Part shown: in pieces, positions 34,130 to 50,933 of the stretch
How the letters are laid out: the number at the start of each line of letters is the position of its first letter
Position numbering within the stretch: the stretch's first letter is position 1
From: Rebecca billardiae RCC1528
Taxonomy: Eukaryota > Protista > Haptophyta
Direction: 5' to 3'
Length of the DNA stretch: 64,000 nucleotides
NCBI GenBank assembly: GCA_965240325.2
Contig: OZ251238.1
Span: 1,364,001-1,428,000 of the forward strand
Made by a program: the position numbers and the translations under genes
The notes under the pieces: model-generated
Databases searched by the model: none
The model's input: only the letters and a program-made list of their open reading frames with translations
Told to the model about the DNA's origin: nothing

Positions 34130-34556
34130 GAGGCGCGCGGACTCCGCCCTGGCGCGAGGCGCGCGCGGCGCGCCACGCTCCTCGGGCTGAGGGGCGGACG
34201 CGCCGAGGGCGCCCCACTGCGGCGCGTCTCTCACGTGACACACCACGCGCGCGGCTCGGCGCGCGACATGTCGGGTCCGGGGTTCGGCGGCGGCGCGATC
34301 CGCCGCAGGCCAAGAGGATGCTCATTTGCACGCCGATCTCCTCTCGCTGCACCGCCTCGAGCCTGCGCACGCGGGCTTGGCATCATGGGCCGGATGGCCG
34401 ATCAGCATACTACGCTACTTCATGACAAGTCCGCCGCTGGCTGCAACTCTGCAAGTGGCATACAGTATATGCTGAGTTATGACGGGCGTGGCTGAATGCC
34501 GCCTGCTGATGAATAATTATATAATTATCTATATATATATAGATAATAGATACATA

Positions 34557-36488
34557 CCAGGTCGTTCCCCCTGCACTGGGAATCCGCGGTTTGGACATAC
34601 GAGAAAAACAGCCGCAGGACGCACCCGTCGCTACCCGCGAATAAGAATTTCAGGTCTCGCGGGTGCGGATGTGCGTCAATCGATGAGCTGGTCTCGCAAT
34701 CCCAAAATTGAGCCGCAATGAGATACTGTAGATGGTGCAGGGAGCCCCCGGCCGGTGGCGGCTCGGCAGGCGAGGGCCGACCAAATCTTGACCTTTGCCC
34801 TCGGCGGCAGGGCGGGCAGGCGAAGGCGGCCGAGCGCCGTTGGCGGCCGGCGCGCCCGGGGCACGGCGCTGCGGGCGCGGATGTGCTCGCGGAGCCGGCT
34901 TGCGTGGACAGGCTGTTGCGGGAGAGTATATGGCGCCCTCCTGCGCCGCGCGTCTCGCGCCACGCCTCTTTTCGCCGCGGCTCAGGGCAGCGCGCACGCG
35001 CGCGCCGCCTCGGAGGCCAGGGCCGCACCGTGCCCGCGCCGCAGCCGCAACCGCGCGCGCGCCGTGCGCGGCGTGGTCGGGAAGGAACGGGGGGTGCTGC
35101 CGGGCGAGATGACGACATCATGTGCGCACGCCATGCCGCCCCGCGGCGCCGCGAAAGGGCACGATAACGGATCCGCACAGCTGTTGACGAGTGCTGATTT
35201 CTTGTCGTGCCTGAAGCCAGACCTCGGAGCTCGAAGAAGATGATGAAAGTGCATCCGCGCGAGGAAAGCGTCGCACCCAGCACTTCTACACGACCACGTG
35301 GTGATGAACATTCATGTAAGAGTATCCCGCGTGCCCGCTTGGCACTGTTCTGTGTCTCAATGATCGTCCCGGCAAGGGTCACGACCGCGAGGCCGTGGCA
35401 CACCATTCATAGTGTGACAACTCGAAGAGGCGTGCAAACGGACCAGCGACACGCTCGGCAAGGCGTGGCGGGGCGGCATGGCGTGCGCACATGATATCGC
35501 CATCTCGCCCGGCAGCCGTGCCCGTTCCTTCCCGACCACGCCGCGCACGGCGCGCACGCGGTCGGCTGCGGCGCAGGCAAGGCTGGCCTTGAGGCGACGC
35601 GCCGCGTGCGCGCTGCCCTGAGCCGAGGCGAAAGAGGCGTGGCGCAAGTCGCGCGGTGCAGGAGGGCGGCAGATACTCTCCCACAACAGCCCGTCCACGC
35701 ACGCCGGCTCCGCAAGCACATCCGCGCCCGCAGCGCCCTGGCCCGGGCGCGGCCCCCAGCGGTCACAACCGCGAGGCCGCGTGCACACCATTTGTGACAA
35801 CTCGAAGAGGCGTGCAAATGGACCAGCGACACGCTCGGCAAGGCGTGGCGGGGCGGCATGGCGTGCGCACATGATATCGCCATCTCGCCCGGCAGCCGCG
35901 CCCGTTCCTTCCCGACCACGCCGCGCACGGCGCGCGCGCGGTCGGCTGCGGCGCAGGCCGAAGGCTGGCCCCGGAGGCGGCGCGCGCGTGCGCGCTGCCC
36001 TGAGCCGAGGCGAAAGAGGCGTGGCGCAAGTCGCGCGGCGCAGGAGGGCGGCAGATACTCTCCCGCAACAGCCCGTCCACGCACGCCGGCTCCGCAAGCA
36101 CATCCGCGCCCCCCAGCGCCGGGCCAGCTGCATCGCACTCGCCGCCCGGCCGCAGGCGCAGGGGGCGGGTCAGAATCGGTGCTCCGCACCCGCGGGAGGG
36201 CTCCCGCCTCCGCGGTTGCACGCGAAGAACTCATTTCCAGCGCCTCGATTTCGTGAGCGGACTATCGCTGACGAGGCTGATTACTGCGTTCCACGGCTTT
36301 GCCGCGCTCGGGATTTGGGTTCTCTAATGGATGGATGTACTTTCGTCATTTTCAATTGGAAACCTCGATTAGATCGTTCAAGTGGTCTGATAGAGCAAGC
36401 GGAAGAATAAATCTGCGTTGCTATGCCGCGGCCTCGTGCTCTGAATAGTGCGAAACCGCGGATTCCCAGTGCAGGGGGAACGACCTGG
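34557..36488. mobile_element. Non-autonomous fold-back DNA transposon with perfect 36-bp TIRs and TA TSD (Tc1/mariner-type signature)
   Basis: TA|CCAGGTCGTTCCCCCTGCACTGGGAATCCGCGGTTT at 34557-34592 and its exact reverse complement at 36453-36488|TA. Long imperfect internal inverted arms and a ~350-bp internal tandem duplication. Confidence 0.9.
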
Positions 36489-37146
36489 TAGATAGACGAT
36501 AGATAGTAGCAGTAGATCATCTATAGATAGTGCGTGCTGAATTTTATATAATACCGCGCTGATGCTGCTGTGAGTAACTACGATATCTGAGTAACTCCGA
36601 CCGGAAGCAAGCGGAACTAGTAAATAGTAATAATAATACTGACACTGACTGATATGACTCGTCAATGATCATGATGCTGCTCACTGACAGAGCGTGGCGA
36701 ACTGGTTGCCGCGGTACCGTCGTGCGCTGCCCGCAGGGTCCGCGTGTTATTGCGTGAGTACATGAGCCGTCGACCAATGAATGCATTATGATGCGCAGCA
36801 CGCGCCCTCGTCGCGACTCGGCCCAGGCCGACGCACGCCGGCTAGCGACGGGCGGAGGCAGAGCCGGGTAGGGCCTTGGTCCCCTCGCCCACGCCTGCGC
36901 AATCAGCCTGCTGGCGCGGGCTGTGCCAGCCGCCGCCGCCGCCGCCGCGACCACTGGCCCTCTGCGGCCGCCTCATGCGGCTGCACTCGCACTCGCGGCC
37001 AGGCCGCGTCGGCCGAGTGCGCCCCGCCGGCCTTGCTGCCTGCCGCCACGTGCCCGCCGCCTCCCTCTCCTCACCCGCCGCCCTCCCCCCCGCCGCACGC
37101 GCGCGCTCGTCGCGCGCCCTCGAGCCGCTGGCGCGGTGCGGCCGCC

Positions 37147-40100
37147 TCATCCGAACGTGAACCCGCCCTGCGGCACGCCGCTCGCCTGCTGCGGCTGGAA
37201 GACAAAGCCCTGCCCGTCCATGGTGGGCGCGACGGACGTGTCCTCTTCGTCGTCGATGCCAAAGTACTGCTCGAGGATGTGCACCGCCTTCTTGTACACG
37301 TCCTCGTTCTGGTGCGACTGCAGCGACTGCGCGGCACCGCACAGCCGGGCGGGCGGGTGGGCGGGCAGTCAGCCGGGTCGGGCAGCGGGCAGTTCAGCGC
37401 GCACCACACACAGAGCCGGCTCCCAGCTCGCAGCAGGGCGCGGTCCCGGGTGCGCGCGCGCGCGGTGGTTGTGGTGGTGATGACGCCATCGTCAGGCGCA
37501 GCGCGACACGCCGGGCCCTGCCGGAACCCCGCCACCGCACGCGTGCCACGCTCGGCCCTGCCCGAGGGAGCCGCCCGCCCGCCACTGCGCCACGCTCGGC
37601 CCTGCCCGAGGGAGGCAGCCCGCCCGCCACTGCACGCACCTCGAGTTTGTCCAATCCCTCGGCCTCGTCCACGAACGCCGTGTACGGGTTCTGCGGGAAC
37701 TGCGCCGGGTTGGAGTTCATCTCCTGCTCGCCCGCCTGAGGGGAGGGGAGGGGGAGGGTGGGCGTGGGCCTCGGTGCGCCAGCCGCTGCTCGGCCGGTGT
37801 GCGGCGCGGAGGCGGAGGAGGCCGCGCCCGCGCGCGCGCGCGCGCACACGCGCGCGCGCACACGCGAACACACACGCACACACACACGCGCACACACGCA
37901 CACGCACGCACACGCACACGCGAACACACACGCACACACCCACGCACACACACGCGCGCGCGCCCGGCCGGCGTGCCGCACCTTGAGAATGTTCTCAATC
38001 CCCTCGAGCGCGACCGTGATGAGGCGCGCGTCCGCCACGACCAGAAGGTCGCACAGCGGCTTGATGCAGCCCTGCTTCACGAGGTACGCGATCTGAGGGC
38101 CAGAGGGGAGGGGGTTAGGGTTGGGGGTAGGGTTAAAGTTAGGGGGCGGGGACACGGGCGGGGTCGGCACCGGCGCGCCCACGAGCGCGCGCACACGCGC
38201 ACGCACACGCGCACGCGCACGCGCACACACACGCGCGCGCACACGCGCACGCGCACACGCACACACGCACGCACGCACACATTACACGCACCTGCTCGGG
38301 CGAGCCGCCCGACGTCGCGTTCGAGATGGACCAGGCCGCCTCCTTCTTGATGTCGAACTCCGCCGTCTGCAGCAGCTGCACGAGCGGGGGCACCACGTTG
38401 GCCTGTGCGCGCGCGCGGTGGACGGGTGGTGCGGCGGCGGGGAGGGCGCGCGCGCGTGAGCCGCGGGCGCGCGCGGCACGCTCGCGCATGCGTCCACGCA
38501 CACACACACACACCGCCGCGCGCGCGCGCGAAAGCCCAACCCCCCTTTGCCCGCGCGCGCAGGGCACCGCACCGCACCGCACCGCACCGCGCGCAGGCGG
38601 CCGCGCGGCCGTGCAGGGCTGCGCCGCCGCCGGCAGCTGCAGCCCCGCGCACCCGGCGCTCCCCCGCGCGAGCTCGCCATCTCGCGCCACGCGCGCTCCC
38701 CCCCGCGCGCTCGCCATCTCGCGCCACAAGCGCGCCCCCGCGCGCGAGCGCGCCATCTCGGCGCGCGCGCGCTCCCCCGCGCGCGCGAGCTCGCGATCTC
38801 GGCGCGCGCGCGCGCCCCCGCGCGCGAGATCGCGATCTCGGCGCGCACCTCGATCACCGCCTGAATCTGCTCGCGCGTGCCGGCGGTGATGTTGGAGATC
38901 GTCCAGCACGCCTCCTTGCGGATGCCCTTCTTGGGCGAGCCGAGCAGCTTGAGCAGCTTGGGCAGCACGCCGCAGTTGATCACCGCCTGCGTCTGCATGT
39001 CGTCGCCCGTGACGATGTTGCCCGCCGTGCGGAGCGCGGGCGTCTGCACGCTCGCCTGCGCCTGCCCCATGAGCTCCACGACGCGCGGGCAGATACCGGT
39101 ATCCAGAACGGCCTGGATCTTCTCGTTCGGCCCGTCGGAGAGGTAGCTGAGCGCCCAGCACCCGTCGGCCAGCACCTCCTCGTCGTTCGAGAAGATCAGC
39201 TGCGCCAGCTTCGGCAGCGCCGGAAGCACCAACTCCCATCTCGGCTGCGGCTTCCCCCTGCACAAGTTGGACAGCGTCCACGTGGCGTTCCGGAGCATAG
39301 ACATCTTGGAGTTGGGGTTGAGCTGCTCGAGCAGCGGCAGCAGCGCGCCGTGGTTCAGCACCAGGTCGCGGCACTCGGGCGAGTCGCCCGCGATGTTGCC
39401 CAGCGCCCACACGGCCTGCGCGCGCGCCGAGCGAGCGAGCAATCCGAGCGCGCGCGCGGTGGCGCGCGCGTGCACGCCGCCGCGCCGCGCCGCGAGCGCG
39501 CGCGCGCGCGCCGCGCGGCGAGAGGCGGCGGTGGGGCGAGGGAGCGGGCGTGAGCGCGCGGCGCACGCGCGGGCGGGCTCGGGCGCCAGCCCGGGCGCAC
39601 CGCCCGCCCTCGCGCACAGCGTGGCAGACCCGCCCGCTCGCGGCCGCCCGCTCGCGGCGCGGCGTGCGCGGCGCTCTCCGCGCGGCGCGCGCGCGCGGCG
39701 ACGGGGGCGCGCGGTGGCGCGGCGGATGCGCGCGGCCCCGCGCCTCGCACCTGCTCGCGCACGTCGTCGTTCAGCGAGAGCAGCAGCTGCACGAAGATCG
39801 GAACGGCCCCGTTGGAAATCACTTCGCGCGTGTGCTCCGACGTGCCGGACGCGATGTTGGTGAGCGCCCAGGCGGCCTCGAACTGCAGCGCGGGGTTGTC
39901 CGCGCACTGGAGGAGCTGGACGAACCGCGGCACCACGCCCGCGTTGATCACCTCCTCGATCGGCGGCGAGCGCTCGATCGAGAGCAGCTTGCGAAACTGT
40001 GTGACCGCTTGCAGCTGGAGCGACGGGTCGTCAGAGTTGATGGAGGCGACGAGCTGCTCGGGGTTGGCGCCCTGCCACGCCTGCAGGCCGAGGTTGCCGA

Positions 40101-40299
40101 ACGACTCGGAGTGCGCGGGCGGCGCGGGCTGCCCGCCGAAGCGCTTCTTCTGCAGGTTCTCTGCGCGCTTCTCCTTGCGGATCGAGATCGTCGTCTCCTC
40201 GCGGTTCCGGCGCGCGTCGTCCTTGTCGAGGGTCTTGTAGCGCGCCGAGTTGAGGCGGCGCGAGGCGGCCGCGCTCTCGGGACGCTCTTCGGAGTCCAT
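37147..40299 (-). CDS. KPNA: Importin subunit alpha (karyopherin alpha), multi-exon
   Basis: IBB domain ([24 protein letters not shown]), ARM repeats ([37 protein letters not shown]), C-terminus ..GGFTFG*. Confidence 0.97.
37830..38290. repeat. Intronic alternating purine-pyrimidine (CA/CG)n tracts
   Basis: Tracts at ~37830-37960 and ~38185-38290 inside importin-alpha introns. Confidence 0.8.
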
Positions 40300-40552
40300 C
40301 GCGGCCGGCGGGACGGGTCGAGCGCGCTGGGCGCCTGGTGCTCGCGACGGCGAGGAAGCGCGCCCCGCAGCGGAGCGCTAGGCTGTGCGCGCGCGCTGAC
40401 CAAGGATGGCGCGCCCGCCGCCCGGAGCGTTGAAGGGTGTGGCCCCGGACTCTTGCAGACCCCCTGGTCGGCGCGCTTGCGCCCGCCTGCCGCCATCTCC
40501 CGGACTTTCAACATGTGAGCGGCCAGCGGTCGGCAGATCGACGGCGGCGAAA

Positions 40553-41254
40553 ATGGTGCTGCTGCTGCGCCGAGCCGCGCTGGGCGTGGGCGCGGCGATC
40601 GCGGGGACGGGGACCTCCCTGGCGTTCGCGCTGCAGCAGCCCGGCCCGCCCCGCTCGGCGCTATCGCCCCGGCCCGTCGTGTACTACGTGGCCAGCTCGC
40701 TCGACGGCTTCATCGCGGGCGAGGGCGACGACCTCTCGTGGCTCGGCGGCCGCGAAGATGCGGTGCTGGCCGGCGCCAACGGCGAGCTGGCCGAGATCGA
40801 CTTTGGCGGCTTCTACGCCGGGGTCGAGTACACCGTCTCCGGCAGCCGCACGTACGACTGGGTCCGCGCGCAGGGCGTCGACGACCCGTACCCGACGAGC
40901 ACCAACTACGTCCTCACCTCGCGCGCGCGAGAGAGAGAGCCTGACCCGCGCGCCATCTTCGCGGACGAGCCGGCGGCAGAGTTGGTGCGCCGGCTGCGGG
41001 TGGCGGAGGGCGCGCCGGGGCGCGCGCGCGGCGCGGTGTGGATCGTCGGCGGCGGACGCCTCGCCACGCAGCTGCTGCGCGCCGGACTGGTCGACACGCT
41101 CGAGGTGAGCGTGCACCCGGTCCTGCTCGGCCGCGGCGCGCCGCTCGTGAGCGCCGAGCTCGGCGAGGCGCGCGTGGACCTGCGCATGCGGGAGGCGGTG
41201 CCGATAAAGAACGGCGTGCTCCGCGTCGTCTACGACGTGGTGCACGCCGGCTGA
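40553..41254 (+). CDS. Dihydrofolate reductase-like / RibD C-terminal domain protein with N-terminal targeting extension
   Basis: VVYYVASSLDGFIAG..DDLSWL, GSRTYD, VWIVGGGRLA, GLVDTLEVSVHPVLLGRGAPL. Intronless. Confidence 0.9.
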   Translation: MVLLLRRAALGVGAAIAGTGTSLAFALQQPGPPRSALSPRPVVYYVASSLDGFIAGEGDDLSWLGGREDAVLAGANGELAEIDFGGFYAGVEYTVSGSRTYDWVRAQGVDDPYPTSTNYVLTSRAREREPDPRAIFADEPAAELVRRLRVAEGAPGRARGAVWIVGGGRLATQLLRAGLVDTLEVSVHPVLLGRGAPLVSAELGEARVDLRMREAVPIKNGVLRVVYDVVHAG

Positions 41255-41920
41255 CCCGCCGCCTGCACGTGCGCCGCACACGCGCAGTAGTGACAGTCCC
41301 GGTGCGGAGTCGGAGTGACTCGGACTATAGTGCAGATCATTGACCAGTGTTCACCCCGTTCGCAGGCCAGGCGCTGGCCTCAATGCGCGGTCAACAATCT
41401 CAGCAGTCTTATTCAGCACAGCAAGCTGCTAACTGAGATCTCTGTCCGGAGCAGCGCGGAGGCTCTTGCTGCACGGCATAGGCGGTTCGGTCACTGACAC
41501 TAAGCCGCCCGTCACTACAGCACTACTCACTAGCGGCCGGCCCGCCGCAGCCGGCCCGCGCGGGCGAGACGTCACAGCCATTGTCACATCAGCTCAGTGG
41601 ACTCTCAGGGGCTCCCCTGGTGACACTCACACTGGCTCTGTCCGACTGCGGCAGACACTGGCGGACTGGCCCTCAAACGTTGAGTGTGTCCGAAACAGCA
41701 GACGCAAGTCGTCGCGGGGTCCGCAGGTCTACGCAGTATGCGGCGGCAGCCCAAGGCGGCGGCGGAGTCACGGCGAGCTGCAATCAGACCGTATCTGCGG
41801 CCTGCGGTCGCCTGCCGCCACGCCAGGCGCGCAGCGCACGCCAGCGGTGGAGCCACCGCGCACTCTACTTCGACGAGCGGATGATTTCGTCACACCCATG
41901 GGTTGAAGCGGATGATTTCG

Positions 41921-43111
41921 TCACACCCATGGGTTGAAGCCGTACTGCGCGACAAAGAGGCGCTCCTCCGCCAGCCACGCGTCGGGGGAGCGGTGGCCCC
42001 AGCCCGCGTTGCCGTACCACTGCCACAGCTGGTCCCCCGCGCACACGGGCAGCGCGTTCGGCGCGTGCACGCTCACGAGCACCTCCCCAGAGTCCGGCGC
42101 AGAGTCCGGCTTCTCGGGCGCGGCCGGGCGCGCGCGCCAGCGCACGCACGCGTCCAGAATCCCGTGCTTGCGGAAGCGCGCGCCCGCCTCGCCGGACGCG
42201 CGCAGCGCGGACTCGGACGGGTGGTTGAGGCAGTCGAAGAAGGGCACCATCACGTACGAGAAGCCCGAGAGCGAGACCCTGGACCGCTCGCCGTCCGACG
42301 GCGCGGCTGAGGGCGCGGCGCGCTCCGCGCCGTCCGCGCCCGAGCCGGCGGCCGCGCCGGCGGAGGCGGTGGCGGCGGCGGTGGCGGCGGCAGCGGCGGG
42401 GCGCGCGGCGGGGACGGCGGTGGACATGTCGAAGCTGCGCGACGCCACGATCACGACGGCGCGGTAGCACTGCGCCTCCGTCGGCGCCGGCTCGCCCGCC
42501 GTCGCCTCGGCCGCCTCGGTCAGAATTGCATGCACCGCCTCGGCCGACACGCGCGCGTCTTCCATGTGCTCGCCCAGCGTCTCGTCATCGCGGAGGACGA
42601 GCGGGTGGTTGCGCAGGGAGTCCTCCCCGCCCGGGCCGCCGTCTCCCCATGGGAGCATGTCCACGTACTCGCCCCACGCGCGCCGCGCGCTCGAGCTCGG
42701 CGCGTAGCGCGCGCGCGCGATCAGGGCGGCCAGCACGACGGCCTCGGCGGCGCGCGCGCCGTCCTGCTGCTGGAGGAAGACGGCGGCAAAGTTGCCGAGC
42801 TCGGGGTCGTTGAGTGCCGCCTCCGCCGAGAGGCACGCGCTCACGGGCACCTCGCCGAGCAGCTCGCGCGCCGCGAGGTCCTCCGTCGCAAAAAGGCCAA
42901 GCCCACCGCCGCATGCGGTGCTCGGTGCCATCTCGACCTTGGGCGAGGCGACGCCGCCGGCGGCGGAGAACCAGCGCGTGAACGCGCTCATGTCGTGCGG
43001 CGCGTTGGGCGTGGATGACCTCGCCGCCGCGCCCGCGCCCCCGCGCGCGAGCAGCACCGGCACGAGCGTGCTAATCAGCCGCATGGGCGTCGTCGTCGTC
43101 GGCGGGGCCAT
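41921..43111 (-). CDS. SET-domain lysine methyltransferase (Rubisco LSMT-like class)
   Basis: GLGLFATEDL..RELLGEVP, WGEYVDMLP, VASRSF, MVPFFDCLNH, GDQLWQWYG. Confidence 0.85.
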   Translation of the reverse strand: MAPPTTTTPMRLISTLVPVLLARGGAGAAARSSTPNAPHDMSAFTRWFSAAGGVASPKVEMAPSTACGGGLGLFATEDLAARELLGEVPVSACLSAEAALNDPELGNFAAVFLQQQDGARAAEAVVLAALIARARYAPSSSARRAWGEYVDMLPWGDGGPGGEDSLRNHPLVLRDDETLGEHMEDARVSAEAVHAILTEAAEATAGEPAPTEAQCYRAVVIVASRSFDMSTAVPAARPAAAAATAAATASAGAAAGSGADGAERAAPSAAPSDGERSRVSLSGFSYVMVPFFDCLNHPSESALRASGEAGARFRKHGILDACVRWRARPAAPEKPDSAPDSGEVLVSVHAPNALPVCAGDQLWQWYGNAGWGHRSPDAWLAEERLFVAQYGFNPWV

Positions 43112-43671
43112 TGTGCCAGTCGGGCGCGACCGGAGTCGTAAAGTTACGTGAGTCAGTCGCCGTTCCGAGCACATGCAACTTGGCAGCCTGACGATCATGC
43201 GGGCCTGTCATCAGCCGGCTACTAATCTTGTTACAAGTACCGTACGGTCAAGTTTGCTTCCACGCGGGATCGCTCCCCGCTCCGGCGCTGCGAATGGTTG
43301 CAATTGTTTGGAGCTTGGCCATTAGGCGCTTCTCCAAGCGTTTTCGTGGATTTCGTCGAGATTTCACGGCTTTCGGCAATCTTCACTGGCGTGTCGTGTC
43401 TCTTCACGAGGGCGCGAATGGGTGGTTCACGCGGACGCGGTCGTAAGAAAACTTCTCGCGAAGGGCTGCAAACTGAAAGGAGATGCGCACCGGCCACTCA
43501 AATCGGCGGATCTTGTGCGGCCCCAAGCACCCCCGGAGCCCGCGATGAGGTCATTAAAAAGCAATCTCCCGAATCCTGATTGCCGCATCGGTCCCTTCAT
43601 CAACGCCGAGAGCCGACCGCGCCCGACGACCGCGCCTCATCAGCACGTCTTTTCGCCCGGCCGACGTCATC

Positions 43672-44311
43672 ATGTTCCGCATGTTCATCCTCCTCGCGCT
43701 CGCGGCCCTCGCCGCGGCGTACCAGGGCCCGATGCCGACGCGCGTGTCGTCGAAGAGCATCGTGATGATGAGCCGCTTCAAGGGCAAGATGTGGGACATG
43801 GACGCGAAGAAGGAGATCTTCGTGCGCGCGCGCTCGCACCGCCGCGCTAATTGCGCGCGCGCGCGCGCGCGCGCGCGCGCGCCGGCCCGCGCGCGCCCCA
43901 TCATGCCACACTCACCGCCACGCGCGCACAATCCCCACCTCGCCCCGCTGAGCAGGCCGAGTGGGACGCGGACAAGCCGCGTGACTACGACAACTTCAAC
44001 CCGTTCGAGCGCGACAGCAACGGCAACTGCTGCGACCCGTCGGGCAAGTTCCCCGGCGAGGGCAACTACCAGGTGCGGCTCCGCGCGTCCGCGCGCGCGC
44101 GCGCTCGGCGTCGCGCCTGTCCTCTGACGCCTCCGCGCCCCGCGCGCGCCCTCCGCAGGACCCGATGCGCCCGGAGGCCAACTGGGAGACGATGCAGAGG
44201 GACCGCGCGATCATGGATGAGATCAACAAGGACCCGCGCATGGCCATCAAGGGCAAGCCCGGCAACTGGAAGTACGGCTGGGACAAGGACCTCGGCATGA
44301 TCATGAACTAA
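43672..44311 (+). CDS. Small plastid-targeted protein of unknown function (exons 43672-43821, 43956-44072, 44159-44311)
   Basis: Signal peptide plus transit-like peptide (AAAY|QGP…IVMM); strongly biased codons; clean GT-AG splicing gives WDADKPRDYDNFNPFERDSNGNCCDPSGKFPGEGNYQDPMRP. Confidence 0.8.
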
Positions 44312-44751
44312 GCGTTGTCACGACGTCGCCCTCTCCCGCGTGAGTGAGGAGCACTGATCTCTGTATCTTCGTGTGCAGCCGCCGTGACGGGCCCGCGGCG
44401 AAATTGTCCACTGCGACGACGTTCCGTTCGGGTGATTGATTGCCAGGCGGCGGCGGCGCTGATCGCGCTGCCGTCGGCTGTCAGCCAGGCTTGTCACGGC
44501 TCTGTATCCAATCTGATGATGCACTGCATTGCGCCTGTAGCTTCGTGCCCTGTGCATGGCCCCCATCGGCGCCCTCCGGCTCGAGAGGATTATAAGACGC
44601 CGTGAGCCTCGCCTCTCGAGTCTCGGCGCTTTCGGCCTTTCGGCGGCGGCCGGCGCCGGACGAACGGTTTAGCCGCGAAAACCGACGACGAAGTCCGGGC
44701 TCCGGGCGCAAGTTCCGGGCGGGCGCACCAGGCTGCACTGGCCTTCCAAGA

Positions 44752-46891
44752 ATGGCGGGGCCGCGCGCGCGCGCCGCGTGGGCGCTGCTCGCGCTCAGCG
44801 TCGCGCCGACGGCGACGTGGGCGAGCCCGGACATCATCGAGCAGATCGCGGCCGATGCGCTCGCTGTCGAGGCGCAGGTCATGCTCTCCATCCACGGCAG
44901 CGCCGCCGAGCCGCGCGCGCGAGAGCTGTGCGAGCGCGCGCTCGCGCAGGACACTTGGAACGTGCGCGCGCTCGAGCTGATGCGCGAGCTGACGAAGCGC
45001 GACAAGGCGTCCGGCACGCAGGCGGCGGCGCTGATGCCACCGCCGCCGTCCACGCCGCCGCCGCTCGCCACGCCCTCGCCGACCGAGCAGCGCGCCGCGC
45101 CGACCGAGTGGCACGAGCGCATCGCGTTGGCCAACGCTAAGATCGAGGAAGCGGTCCGGATCCAGACGTTCGACGTGGACTCGTACACGCGCACGCCGCA
45201 CGTGATCAAGCTGTACGAGGACGCGCTGCGCACGCTGCCCGAGCTCGCGCAGGTCGAGCCCACGCTCGCGGCGAGCGTGTACGACAACATGGCCGTCGCG
45301 CTGCGCGCGATCGACCGGATCGACGAGGCGATCGTTGCGCACCGGCGCGCGACCGAGATCTCGCCGGCGGTGGCGCGGCACCACATGAACCTCGCGGGCA
45401 CGCTGTACATGCAGGGCGACACGGCCGAGGCGGCCAAGTCGTGCCGCGTCGCGCTCGAGCTCAACCCGATGCACGCCAAGGCTTTGAACATCCTCAACTC
45501 CGTCGAGCCAATCACGGACAAGAGCGACCCTAGGCTCGGCCTGCTGCGGCGGCACGTGGCAGCGACGGCGGAGCTGACGGACGAGGAGCGCACGCTGTCG
45601 CACTTCGACCTGTACCGCGCGCTGGACAAGCTCGGGCGGTACGACGAGGCGTGGGAGCACCTCGAGCGGGGCAACGAGCTCGCGCTGCAGGACATGCTCG
45701 CGCGCCCGAACGCCGACGGCGCCGGCGGCGCGCACGTGCCCAGCGAGTCCGACCTGGAGTCAACGGTGCAGCTGCTGTCGTCCGTGTTTCGTCAGGAGTA
45801 CGTGGCGGAGGCGCTGCGCGCGGCGGAGGGCGCGTGGCGCGCGGCGGGCGCGCCCGACTCCGACGCCGCGTGGTCCGCCCAAGCCGAGCGCACCGCGCCC
45901 GTCTTCATCGTCGGCGCGTACCGGTCCGGCTCGACACTGATTGAGACTATCTTGTCGTCGCACTCGCGCGTGCACGGCGCGGGCGAGAACACCGCGCTGG
46001 CGCCCGCGGTGGCGGTGGCGGCGCAGGCGCTGGCCGACGAGGGGTACCCCGCGCGCGGCTACCCGGGCATCTTCTTCGAGGCGGCGGCGCGCGAGCCGCG
46101 CGCGTGGGAGCGCGTCGGCGCGCACTACATGGCGCTGATGCGCGAGTCCAAGACGGTGCAGGCGGCGGGCAAGCCTCGGTGGGCGGACAAGAACCTGGGG
46201 AACTCGCGGCTGGTGGGCGTGATCAGCCTGGCGATGCCGCGCGCGCGGATCGTGCACACGGTGCGCTCGCCCGTCGCCACGTGCTTCTCGATGTACACGC
46301 AGCACTTCACGCAGGGCTCGGCCGAGGGCCGATGGTTCACCTGCCGGCAGCGCTCGCTCGTCGCGCACTACCGCGCGCAGCACCGAATGATGAAGCACTG
46401 GGAGTCGGTCCTGCCGGCCGGACGCATGCTCACGGTCCGGTACGAGGACGTGGTGGCCGGGCAGGAGGAGCTCACGCGCCGGATCGTCGCGTACTCGGGC
46501 CTCGAGTGGGAGGACGCGTGCCTCCAGTTCCACAAGAGCAAGCGCTCGGTCGCCACCGCCTCGCTCTCACAGGTGCGCAAACGCGCGCGCGCCCGACCGC
46601 CGCGCGCCTCGCCGCGCCCGCTCCGGGCGGCGCCGTGCGCGCCCTCGGCTAACGCGCGCCCGCGCCGCGGGGCTTGCCTCGGCGTGCGCCGCGCTCCGTG
46701 CCGCCCGCGCCCGCGCGGCGCAGGTGCGCAAGCCCATCTACAACTCGTCGCTCGAGTCGTGGCGGCGGTACGAGGGCCGCCTGCAGACGCTCGTCGACGG
46801 GCTGGCGGACCTGGAGGGCGTCGACTGGCCGAGCGCGCGCTGGCCGCCCGCGGCGGCCGACGAGCCGCCCGATGTGGCGGGGGCGGCGTAA
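44752..46891 (+). CDS. TPR-repeat sulfotransferase (Sulfotransfer_3)
   Basis: Signal peptide, TPRs, PVFIVGAYRSGSTLIETILSSH, DKNLGN, VRYEDVV, TASLSQ|VRKPIYNSSLESWRRYE. One intron at ~46573-46723. Confidence 0.9.
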
Positions 46892-47321
46892 TTGCAGCCG
46901 TCGTAACAATATTTCAATTTGCTATACGACGAGTACGCGTACGCACGGTTCTCTCGGCTCATTCCGCCGGGCTGATGAATGCCAGCCAGCTAGCAGCACG
47001 CGGTAACCCGTCCGGGACTCCGCGGAATTGATCAAATATCAGTGACAGTACCGCGGACTGTACGGTATGTACTATGTACCGGTAGCGGCGGTAGCGGCGG
47101 CACGGTCCGCCCGCGACGCCGTGCCCCCGACGCGGCCGACGCCCCCGCGCGCGGCCTGGGCGGCCCGACTCGGACGCGAGGCACACGTACTCCGTCATCA
47201 GTCATAGACTGAGACTCATATACTCATCATCATGCGCCCGCCATGTCAGCCATATGTGGCCGCCTCTGAAACACCATAAGTCGTCACACAGTCCGCACGG
47301 CCACGGAGTGACTGACCGGGA

Positions 47322-47864
47322 CTAGTCAAGCCGCATGCACACGACGGAATGCGGCAGGGCCAGCCGCTTGACCACTCGCCTCCCGCGCGCGAGCTTCGCC
47401 TGGAGCGCGTCGGGCAGGCCTCTCTCGTCGTCGACGACGCAGAAGCCGAAGCGCTCGTAGAACGGCACTCGGTTTGACAGCAGCACGCAGTGCACGGCCG
47501 GGCGAGGCTGCGCGCCGTCTCTGAGGCCGTGCGCGAGGCAGGAGCGAACCAAGGCGCTGCCGATCCCACAACCACGCTCGCCCTTCTTGACGACGACGGA
47601 CGCGAGCTCGAGGCTGTTCTCCGCGACCGGTCTGAGCTGCGAGGCGCCTACGAGCTCCTGCGAGGCGGAGCGGCGCGCGACGATAAAGTTTGCGTGGTCG
47701 AGCGATTCAGAGGGCAGGCCGTTGGCCTTGAGCTCGCCCCGAATCCACACCAGGTCCGTTCGTTGCGCGGGGGCGAAGACCAGGGCGCTGCCTGCGGACA
47801 CGCGCGCGCTGCTCGCCGATGCGCCCGCCGCCAGCACGTGGACGAGGCGACGACGCGCTGCCAT
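47322..47864 (-). CDS. GNAT-family N-acetyltransferase
   Basis: ELASVVVKKGERGCGIGSALV (acetyl-CoA motif A) and PFYERFGF. Confidence 0.85.
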   Translation of the reverse strand: MAARRRLVHVLAAGASASSARVSAGSALVFAPAQRTDLVWIRGELKANGLPSESLDHANFIVARRSASQELVGASQLRPVAENSLELASVVVKKGERGCGIGSALVRSCLAHGLRDGAQPRPAVHCVLLSNRVPFYERFGFCVVDDERGLPDALQAKLARGRRVVKRLALPHSVVCMRLD

Positions 47865-48058
47865 CGCGCGCAATAAATTTGAGCGCATCAGCCCGAATAA
47901 TATATCGATCTCGATTCAGCGCATAGCTACCAGTAGCCACGACTCGGACTGGTGCTGATCATCAGCCTAGTTGAACACGATGCCTCTCATCGATGCGCGA
48001 TCGTCATGATGATGCGTCGGATGATGACGCGACAGGCGCGGCGTGCGACGCTGTAGCA

Positions 48059-49612
48059 TCAGATGTCATGGGCAGCATCCGTCGTGCTGCGCGCGCCCGA
48101 GGGTGCGAGCGGCTCCGGCGCCGCGGCTGCGGAAACTGTCGAGGCCGCCGACGCCGCCTTTCGGCGGCACAGGGCCCGGTGCACCGGCCACGCGCGGTAC
48201 GTCGCGGCGCAGCCAACGACCGGCCCCGGCGCGAGCAGCAAAAACGCCAGGCCGGGGTCCACGCCGGCCGCGCCGACGAGCGCGCCGAGGCCCTGGATGG
48301 TGACGACGGTGAGGGCGAAGCCGACGCAGGTGGTGAGAGTGAGCGCGGTGCCCACGTACTCGCGCAGCGCGAACGCGGCGCAGAGCGAGGAGAACTGCCC
48401 CGAGTCCGCCACCACCGCGCCGCCCCAGAGGACGACGTACGCGGTGAACAGCGGTGGGCTGAGGCGCTGGTACAGCGGAGCGGCCAGGCAGCACGCCAGT
48501 GAGAGGCTGAGGGCGAACAGCGCCGCAAGCGCGCTGCCAGGCACCTCCGCCGTGCCCGCCCGGAGCGAGACGACACCCGCGAGCACCGACGCGGGCGCGC
48601 CCGCCGCGATCGCCACGAACACCGTCATCTCCGCCGAGAGCGGCGGCGGCGCCGCGTCGGCGCGCGCGGCCGCGCCCGCGCCGTGCGCTCGCACCAGCGC
48701 GGGCAGGTACGCCCAAAAAGCGTACAGCTCCCACATGTGCCCCAAGTAGCCAAGCGCGGCGGCGCGGAACTCGCGGCCGCGGAGCATCGCGCGCACCGAC
48801 TCGGGGCCCACCTGCAGCCCGTGCCCGCCGCCGGCGGGCGCGTCCTCGGCGCCCGCGGCCGGCGCGCCGGCGGCGCGGCGCCCGCACGAGCACGCAGTGA
48901 ATGTTTGAACGGCCGCGAGGCGCGTGCCGGGTGTCAGCAGGATGGCCGGCATAAGCAGCCCGCCGAGCGCGGCGAGGGCGGAGACGAGGCCCAGCGTCGC
49001 GCGCCAGCCCGCCGCCTCGAGCCCGCCCGCGCCCGCCGCCGCCGCGCCCTGGGCGGAGCCGGGGCCGGCGCCGGAGGCGTCAGAGGCGGAGGCGGCGCCG
49101 GAGGCGGAGGCGGGGGCGGAGGCGGACGCTGGGCCCAGCGCGCGCAGCAACCATGGGAAGGCTGTGCCGAGAGTGAGCGCGCCGATCACCAGGCCGAGGC
49201 GGCCGCCGAGGCCGTCGGGGTACTGCCGCGCCGCGATGCGCATGCCCACCGGGTAGATCCCCGCCATGCACACGCCAACAAGCGCGCGCAGCACACACCA
49301 CGCGCCGAAGCTGGTCGTGGTGACACACGCCGCGTTGCATGCGGCGCCGGCGAGGCTCATGAGCGCGAAGATGAGCGGCGCGGAGAAGCGGTCGGCGACG
49401 GCGAAGTAGGTCAGCGTGAACGTGCCCGCGATGAACCCAAGCTGCACCAGCGACGTCAGCACCGCCACCTCGTTGCCCGCGCCGAATTGCTCGATCTGCG
49501 AGAGCACCGCGTTCGGCGCAAACCAGAGCGACGTGCCGGCGAACTGCGCGAAGACGATGGTCGGGAGGATGAGGGCGCGGCGGATGCGCTCGGGCGCGGG
49601 GGGCTCGCCCAT
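48059..49612 (-). CDS. Major facilitator superfamily transporter (bacterial-like)
   Basis: About 12 TM helices; AQFAGTSLWFAPNAV, LTSLVQLGFIAGT, GIYPVGMR, GYLGHMWELYAFWAY, VVADSGQFS. Intronless. Confidence 0.9.
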   Translation of the reverse strand: MGEPPAPERIRRALILPTIVFAQFAGTSLWFAPNAVLSQIEQFGAGNEVAVLTSLVQLGFIAGTFTLTYFAVADRFSAPLIFALMSLAGAACNAACVTTTSFGAWCVLRALVGVCMAGIYPVGMRIAARQYPDGLGGRLGLVIGALTLGTAFPWLLRALGPASASAPASASGAASASDASGAGPGSAQGAAAAGAGGLEAAGWRATLGLVSALAALGGLLMPAILLTPGTRLAAVQTFTACSCGRRAAGAPAAGAEDAPAGGGHGLQVGPESVRAMLRGREFRAAALGYLGHMWELYAFWAYLPALVRAHGAGAAARADAAPPPLSAEMTVFVAIAAGAPASVLAGVVSLRAGTAEVPGSALAALFALSLSLACCLAAPLYQRLSPPLFTAYVVLWGGAVVADSGQFSSLCAAFALREYVGTALTLTTCVGFALTVVTIQGLGALVGAAGVDPGLAFLLLAPGPVVGCAATYRAWPVHRALCRRKAASAASTVSAAAAPEPLAPSGARSTTDAAHDI

Positions 49613-49731
49613 GCGCGCCGCGCGCCGGTGCGTGGCGCGCCGCGGCAAGGCCGGCTGCACGTGGCGCGAGCGAACGGCGGTGGCGGCGATGGAGGACTCC
49701 GTCTCGCGCCCGGAAAAAGCGACCACTGAGC

Positions 49732-50840
49732 CAAGGGAGTCAAGGGTGCCCGCGCCCCAGTGGCGCGCTCGGCGGATGTTGGGATACACCTTTTTGCCCG
49801 CGGCCCTGCGGCGGCGGCGGCGATGGCGTGCTCCGCTGGCGGGGCGAGCGCACGGGGCACGGCGCTGCGGGCGCGGATGTGCCCGCGAAGCCGGCGCGTG
49901 CGGACGGGCTGTTGCGGGAGAGCATCTGGCGCCCTCCTGCGCCGCGCGACTTGCGCCACGCCTCTTTCGCCTCGGCTCAGAGCAGCGCGCACGCACGCGC
50001 CGCCTCAAGGCCAGCCTTGCCGCGCCGCAGCCGACCGCGCGCGCGCCGTGCGCGGCGTGGTCGGGAAGGAACGGGCGCTGCTGCCGGGCGAGATGGCGAC
50101 GTCATAGGCGCACGCCATGCCGCCCCGCCACGCCTTGACGAGAGTGTCGTCGGTCCGTTTGCACGCCTTTTCGACTTGTCACAAATGGTGTGCACTGCCT
50201 CGCGGTCGTGACCGTTGTCGGGACGATCATTGAGACACAGAACAGTGCCAGACGGGCACGCGGGCTACTCTTACATGAATGTTCATCACCGCGTGGTCAT
50301 GTAGAAGTGCTGGGTGCGACGCTTTCCTCGCGCTGATGCTCTTTCATCATCTTCTTCGAGCTCAGGTCTGGCTTCAGGCACGGCAAGAAATCAGCACTCG
50401 TCAACAGCTGTGCGGATCCGTTCTCGTGCTCTTTCGCGGCGCCGCGGGGCGGCATGGCGTGCGCCCATGACGTCGCCATCTCGCCCGGCAGCAGCGCCCG
50501 TTCCTTCCCGACCACGCCGCGCACGGCGCGCGCGCGGTCGGCTGCGGCGCGGCAAGGCTGGCCTTGAGGCGGCGCGTGCGTGCGCGCTGCTCTGAGCCGA
50601 GGCGAAAGAGGCGTGGCGCAAGTCGCGCGGCGCAGGAGGGCGCCAGATGCTCTCCCGCAACAGCCCGTCCGCACGCGCCGGCTTCGCGGGCACATCCGCG
50701 CCCGCAGCGCCGTGCCCCGTGCGCTCGCCCCGCCAGCGGAGCACGCCATCGCCGCCGCCGCCGCAGGGCCGCGGGCAAAAAGGTGTATCCCAACATCCGC
50801 CGAGCGCGCCACTGGGGCGCGGGCACCCTTGACTCCCTTG
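49732..50840. mobile_element. Non-autonomous fold-back element with ~397-bp near-perfect inverted arms and 7-bp TSD (P-superfamily-like)
   Basis: ACTGAGC|CAAGGGAGTCAAGGG…CCCTTGACTCCCTTG|ACTGAGC. Arms at 49732-50128 and 50444-50840, spacer at 50129-50443. Confidence 0.92.
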
Positions 50841-50933
50841 ACTGAGCAGAAAAAGAAAAGGTCCGAAGAGAAGTAGAAAGCCGGGCCGTGGCGATCGCCG
50901 CCATCGTTGCAGCGCGCGGCCTCGGGCGCGACG

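Follow-up and report, generated by a model that had tools for sequence, protein, structure and literature searches.

Chimeric and foldback-like transposons have been described in animals. In mammals, MER6/MER6A is a mariner-derived MITE (miniature inverted-repeat transposable element) that has mariner ends and a core derived from a V-SINE (PMC6887750). In Drosophila, Galileo is a foldback-like member of the P superfamily producing 7-bp target site duplications (TSDs); its nested and chimeric copies, and the expansion of its arms by tandem repeats, are well described (PMC4168063). For Mos1, the sequence of the inverted terminal repeat (ITR) is available (PMC3419177). Here these systems are compared with two transposons, element A and element B, of the haptophyte alga Rebecca billardiae RCC1528. 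Both elements lie on a 64,000-nucleotide stretch of contig OZ251238.1 (C21:1364001-1428000 in the 72-Mb, 41-contig assembly GCA_965240325.2), hereafter called the window. They have different ends and different TSD classes, and have about 1 kb of sequence in common because, as we read the data, the A family long ago took in a copy of a B-type element. The interior of A is probably one complete though decayed B-type foldback, which was acquired once and has since been a passenger on the mariner-like ends of A.

Like MER6, element A has mariner-type ends around a core that belongs to an unrelated transposon family, and the chimera was amplified as a unit via its outer ends. MER6 is a direct precedent for a mariner-ended MITE with a core from another transposon. 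Unlike MER6, where the passenger is a SINE (short interspersed nuclear element) domain, A carries a whole foldback DNA transposon with two arms and a loop. Moreover, the family that donated the core remains active in this genome, and with copies at least 99.8% identical the chimera is very young. Element A also shares TA flanks and short perfect terminal inverted repeats (TIRs) with Mos1 and the Stowaway-type mariner MITEs. The Mos1 5' ITR begins with the same six bases as A (CCAGGT), and the two also have in common a GGGAAT..CGGTT stretch at the inner end (PMC3419177). In contrast to typical mariner MITEs, A is far longer (1.5-1.9 kb). Element B is similar to Galileo in its long foldback TIRs, 7-bp TSDs, palindromic target, tandem-repeat changes of arm length and nested or dimeric copies. 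Its target, however, is the GC-rich NCNNNGN and not GTANTAC; its termini are made of CAAGGG modules, its host is an alga and no transposase is linked to it, membership in the P superfamily being a matter of resemblance only.

Sequence Data and Searches

Coordinates without a contig label are window positions, and C-number labels designate contigs of the assembly. Genome-wide counts refer to the 72-Mb assembly. Pattern counts were paired with reversed-pattern controls for the TA+TIR site of A, the terminus of B, the left-end motif of A and the core motif; all of these controls gave 0 matches. The 22 complete A copies were stitched from fetched loci, and their TA flanks and identities were read from these. 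Placement of the core motif inside A elements was established by comparison with the lists of TIR sites and left-end motifs, two left ends being placed via a left-end similarity search. The TSD sample for B comprised 14 independent sites of the 1109-bp form and one site of a 1139-bp variant, 15 in all.

The Core Shared by A and B

Element B (49732-50840) is a 1109-bp foldback consisting of two nearly perfectly complementary arms and a short spacer, flanked by a perfect 7-bp direct repeat (Table 1). Element A (34557-36488) is bounded by a 38-nt inverted repeat (34555-34592 and 36453-36490, 100% complementary), which is composed of TA and a 36-bp TIR (CCAGGTCGTTCC, starting with CCAGGT). Apart from this repeat, the two subterminal regions of A are mutually unrelated. 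Between them lies the shared core: positions 102-1048 of B align to window positions 35762-34794 on the minus strand with 88.6% identity over 973 columns (BLAST bit score 1219), a similarity far beyond chance. Weak homology to B goes on outward from 34794 to ~34738. Extra homology is found at 35842-36125, in a third arm copy; ~380 bp of the core (~35378-35762) are tandemly repeated at ~35763-36139.

The A core matches B best in the spacer (94-95% identity), followed by the inner arms (~90-93%) and the left arm taken as a whole (~84%), and the similarity fades in the outer 60-100 nt. The cores of a second A subfamily, described below, are somewhat nearer to B (90-93.6%). At both ends of the core, where B has CAAGGGAG, a mirrored GGGAGCCC motif is kept, as CAGGGAG at 34738 and as CTCCCGC ending at 36207. 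Judging by its resemblance to CAAGGGAG, the CAGGGAG outer end of the left arm is probably a decayed terminus of this type. A has the features of a chimeric MITE: its core is homologous to an independent transposon family, its outer ends are unrelated to that family and the whole is amplified as a unit.

An earlier note on this stretch, made from the sequence alone, had recorded the perfect 36-bp TIRs and TA flanks of A as well as the CAAGG termini and 7-bp TSD of B, and all of these are present. It had placed the core at ~34856-35740, with weaker similarity outward to ~34735. The shared core is real, but its strong homology is slightly wider (34794-35762), the weak part reaching ~34738, and the third arm had been overlooked. 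As the orientation of A is arbitrary, to call the core reversed is not meaningful by itself.

The window copy of A sits within an AT-rich (TATA)/(GATA)n microsatellite island (34500-34556 and 36491-36545) in a genome that otherwise has ~70% GC.

The A Family

About 52 copies of A are present in the genome. The 26-nt TA+TIR pattern has 109 matches. The two ends of A (184 nt on the left, 289 nt on the right) are each found at at least 40 places with 95-100% identity, the right end being 100% identical at 19 places beyond the window copy. All 22 complete copies read TA-CCAGG...CCTGG-TA. Two of them lie within one 5.3-kb segmental duplication, which leaves 21 independent sites. The bases just outside TA mismatch between the two sides, and the repeat is therefore 2 bp long. 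Across the whole 1.93 kb, twenty copies match the window copy at 99.8-99.95% identity, and the variability of the core is not above that of the ends. The family is young, has mariner-like 36-bp TIRs and is probably non-autonomous and TA-inserting.

A second subfamily is 1949 bp long and ~95% identical, having the same layout and the same core. One of its members (C29:1330354-1332694, 2341 bp) carries three tandem right arms, with TA retained on both sides. A shorter class of seven copies, among them C21:395630-397146 and C10:3141010-3142527, measures 1518 bp between the TAs, and two longer elements of the family measure 2.6 kb and 3.0 kb; in all of them the core motif is present, as read from motif and TIR positions. 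The 1518-, 1932-, 1949- and 2341-bp forms suggest that arm copy number varies within the family.

The association of core and ends was followed with two motifs. The left-end motif (34639-34663) has 52 matches in the genome, lying 84 nt from the TA+TIR site in every copy compared with the TIR list. The core motif, taken from the outer left arm where A differs from B, likewise has 52 matches, each of them inside an A-type element. From these equal counts, neither an A element lacking the core nor a free copy of the A core variant was detected genome-wide. The earlier note had foreseen that A copies devoid of the core would point to a one-off nested insertion; here the core accompanied all 52 motif matches.

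At two loci known by their coordinates (C22:1542805-1549271 and C31:1015709-1018037), the left-end and core motifs are 4.6 kb and 2.3 kb apart, respectively, versus the usual ~130 nt; these copies probably carry further nested insertions. Orphan A-type TIR sites, again given by coordinates, are found at C13:2801052, C29:1200763 and C39:259690. An exact-match scan of public metagenome contigs gave 0 matches for the A TIR.

The B Family

The 25-nt terminus of B has 132 matches in the genome versus 0 in the control, mostly paired 1109 bp apart, which corresponds to ~66 copies. Copies show 2-8 differences from the window copy per 1109 positions (at least 99.3% identity). Perfect 7-bp TSDs were found at all 15 independent B-type sites. 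When the 14 sites of the 1109-bp form were read on both strands, position 2 of the TSD was C and position 6 was G in 21 of 28 readings, a small sample which indicates a palindromic NCNNNGN target preference. Hence the difference in ends and TSD classes claimed in the earlier note holds at the level of families, with TA in 22 of 22 A copies and 7 bp at every sampled B site. The movement had also been supposed to be recent, in agreement with the identities within the two families. B represents a young family of non-coding foldback DNA transposons whose 403-bp arms are their TIRs, inserting with 7-bp duplications at weakly palindromic targets.

A variant of B at C10:2718437-2719575 (1139 bp, 97% identity) carries one additional module of 15 bp (CAAGGGTAGTAAGGG) beyond each terminus, and the 7-bp TSD, GTCGTGC, lies farther out than this module. 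It follows that the ends of the B family are tandem CAAGGG modules, and that its forms differ in which module is used as the outermost one.

A segmental duplication on C10 is present in three copies (C10:802207-803315, C10:821394-822502 and C10:846662-847770), with 500-bp flanks 100% identical on both sides and the common TSD GCTGATG. In the middle copy (C10:821394-822502), the whole B is inverted between the identical flanks, its reverse complement showing 99.7% identity. Recombination between the arms could have caused such a flip-flop inversion, or the assembly could have produced it. Double B elements of ~2.2 kb occur at C35:398653-400845, with a single 7-bp TSD (GTCCGGG) outside, and at C12:1763943-1766167, where one B copy is placed 24 nt inside the terminus of another. 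At C18:1720415-1733056, known from its coordinates, two exact B termini are oriented towards each other at a distance of 12.6 kb. The locus could be a longer, possibly coding member of the family, or two elements with partner ends beyond the mismatch limit of the pattern. No exact match to the B terminus was found in public metagenome contigs.

Origin of the Core

The proposed history would have four steps. A B-type foldback would have entered an ancestor of A once, before the two A subfamilies split (~5% divergence ago), either by nested insertion or by capture during gap repair. The embedded foldback would then have lost its functional CAAGGG ends and any flanking 7-bp duplication. One arm would have gained the 380-bp tandem duplication. 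Afterwards, the foldback would have been copied only as a passenger via the outer ends of A, supposedly by a TA-specific transposase of the Tc1/mariner type. Nesting followed by re-mobilization, one of the routes put forward in the earlier note, fits the data.

Several observations weigh against this history. A 7-bp TSD around the core is absent in both A subfamilies (the 7-mers in the window copy are GATGGTG versus CTCCGCG), so that a clean nested insertion lacks its expected mark. Divergence from B, and between the two arms, is far greater in the outer 60-100 bp of the core arms than farther in, which could equally mean that a truncated copy was captured. No core-less A representing the pre-insertion state was found genome-wide, and neither the genome family searches nor the terminus lists revealed an autonomous element with A-type or B-type ends. 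Furthermore, the 1518-bp class is known by its motif positions, and the TA duplication is putative, as read from the flanks, a TA belonging to the element being the alternative.

The same facts may be read as capture of another kind. A could have arisen during the repair of an autonomous TA-type element after excision, when template switching brought in part of the interior of a neighbouring B-type foldback as filler DNA. In that case the core, while inside A, would never have possessed a 7-bp TSD or functional ends. This agrees with the lack of a 7-bp TSD around the core and with the homology to B fading across the outer 60-100 bp of both core arms. The unrelated subterminal regions of A would also be expected as remnants of a longer progenitor. 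The mirrored GGGAGCCC at both core ends, where B has its CAAGGGAG terminus, speaks against it, as it suggests that whole ends were once present. The left core junction is not the same in the two A subfamilies, so the lack of a TSD can be put down to later decay. This kind of capture is considered unlikely, although it keeps an appreciable share of the probability. A decayed, complete foldback remains the preferred reading of the core, and it has to be compared with the opposite direction of transfer as well. The palindrome could have existed first in A, or as an independent module, and B could have gained its CAAGGG ends later, making the palindrome a neutral cargo of two vehicles, as the earlier note had proposed, with terminus swapping as one of its two routes. 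The bare fact of a shared core with different ends would be accounted for in this way. However, such a swap, or the derivation of B from A, is very improbable because the arms of B, which serve as its TIRs, extend without a break up to the ends of the element, a sister form of B merely adds a 15-bp CAAGGG module outside the terminus with the TSD beyond it, and the A core variant was never detected outside A. The ends of the A core also resemble decayed B ends, and not the reverse. Swapping thus found no support, and instead of a neutral cargo the palindrome appears to be the long TIRs of B itself in the one family and a decayed B-type element in the other. The remaining explanation, that assembly errors or low-complexity GC-rich sequence imitate the relationship, draws on the ~70% GC and many simple repeats of the genome, and on the flipped B copy between identical flanks in the triplicated C10 segment, which could be an assembly effect. 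It is hardly credible given the length and identity of the 973-column alignment, the exact TSDs and unique flanks of dozens of copies dispersed in the genome, and the silent reversed-pattern controls. The distinct flanks of the dispersed copies refute it.

Superfamily Placement and Candidate Transposases

The labels Tc1/mariner for A and P/Galileo-like for B are putative, being derived from TSD length and termini only. The TA flanks of A (both sides in 22 of 22 complete copies, as read from flanks), its short perfect TIRs and its CCAGGT start point by resemblance to an enzyme of the Tc1/mariner type. By a similar resemblance, the 7-bp TSDs, the palindromic target seen at 14 sites and the foldback build of B would place it near Galileo of the P superfamily.

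Two other assignments were tried for B and rejected. The terminus CAAGG is compatible with both YARNG, the hAT consensus, and CANRG, that of P elements, so termini do not discriminate between these superfamilies. The hAT superfamily requires an 8-bp TSD, and that of B was 7 bp at 15 of 15 sites. Drosophila Foldback (FB) and Mutator-related foldbacks have 9-bp (8-11-bp) TSDs, which equally excludes them.

The earlier note had called for autonomous mariner and P transposases with matching TIRs, and none were found in family searches of the genome. No open reading frame (ORF) within A or B had a Pfam match; among the 13 ORFs scanned in and around the elements, the sole match was a neighbouring MFS gene. 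Among the 109 A-type TIR sites there was no autonomous element, and every checkable paired site carries the A core. Six-frame searches of the genome gave one match to DDE_3 (C31:420119-420556) and one to the pogo DDE_1 (C26:648473-648823), neither adjoining A-type TIRs. The mariner family PF01359 gave no match, but its control was equally silent. In these searches, no mariner, Tc1 or pogo transposase with the TIRs of A was detected. The P-type transposase domain TNP-like RNaseH_N had its sole genome match (32 bits) at C21:1533970-1534365, 106 kb past the end of the window, where the open frame spans 1322 codons. The list of exact (0-mismatch) B termini on C21 shows none in the vicinity of this match. 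By the listed coordinates, none of the DDE_3, DDE_1 and RNaseH_N matches lies between A-type or B-type termini.

A further reading joins the palindrome and the enzymes. The long hairpin itself might favour amplification or retention and not be a mere passenger; a linked idea is that the CAAGGG foldbacks may be driven by the P-like transposase of the alga. The hairpin may act through synapsis of the ends, through replication stalling that leads to copying by repair, or through seeding of small RNAs. The number of right arms would then be one in the 1518-bp variant (judging by length only), two in the 1932-1949-bp variants and three in the 2341-bp variant. We regard this reading as improbable. 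If true, the benefit of the hairpin would explain why a palindrome thrives under two unrelated transposases and why arm expansion is ongoing, and the P-like drive would make the CAAGGG foldbacks Galileo-like foldbacks of the P superfamily outside animals.

Features of the Window

The coordinates of the parts of both elements are collected in Table 1. An MFS transporter gene (Pfam MFS_1, E = 6e-12) lies at 48059-50008 on the minus strand, and B is situated in its upstream region. The mechanical ORF of this gene extends into the left arm of B by chance. The GC content is ~70%, and the window sequence contains (CG)n/(CA)n microsatellites together with gene fragments of the introns-and-exons type. 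At 37780-38300 and 38650-38850 there are compound microsatellites of (CG)n/(CA)n, which are long, and a tandem array whose period is ~37-41 bp (unit roughly GCGCGCCCCCGCGCGCGAGCTCGCGATCTCGGC).

Table 1. Parts of elements A and B and their flanks, in window positions.
Feature	Position	Strand	Remarks
TA flank of A, left	34555-34556		Partner TA at 36489-36490; both sides TA in 22/22 complete copies
Left 36-bp TIR of A, start CCAGGT	34557-34592	+	100% complementary to 36453-36488
A-specific left subterminal region	34593-34737	+	No B homology; holds motif 34639-34663 (52 genome matches)
Embedded foldback, left arm	34738-35150	+	83.8% to B 62-403; outer ~60 nt align weakly
Embedded foldback, spacer (loop)	35151-35461	-	Homologous to B 50135-50437, reversed; segments 95% and 94% complementary to B 50193-50538
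Embedded foldback, right arm copy 1, outer end truncated	35462-35762	+	90.1% to B 707-1008; 91% complementary to left arm
Tandem repeat of spacer tail and right arm (copy 2), out to putatively decayed right terminus CTCCCGC	35763-36207	+	Repeats 98% and 87%, spacing 380-382 bp; 91.2% to B 707-985
A-specific right subterminal region	36208-36452	+	No B homology; right end repeated in genome; no Pfam match
Right 36-bp TIR of A	36453-36488	-	Pairs with left TIR, 100%
7-bp TSD of B, ACTGAGC	49725-49731		Partner at 50841-50847
Left arm (403-bp TIR) of B, terminus CAAGGGAGTCAAGGG	49732-50134	+	99.3% complementary to 50438-50840
Spacer (loop) of B, 303 bp	50135-50437	+	96-100% identical at at least 40 places elsewhere in genome
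Right arm (403-bp TIR) of B	50438-50840	-	Complementary to left arm

Meaning of the Finding

Element A is an ordinary kind of transposon chimera and not a new kind of mobile element. What sets this case apart is that an entire foldback transposon, from a family still active here, serves as the passenger, and that both families are very young. The finding provides copy-level evidence of the way in which a non-autonomous family may be assembled from parts of two superfamilies before it bursts. For annotation of this alga it carries a warning, as similarity-based classification of repeats would merge two mechanistically different families. One palindrome with live ends in B and dead ends inside A, both in one genome, constitutes a natural experiment, and the comparison of live and dead ends could define the terminal bases needed by the transposase that makes 7-bp TSDs.

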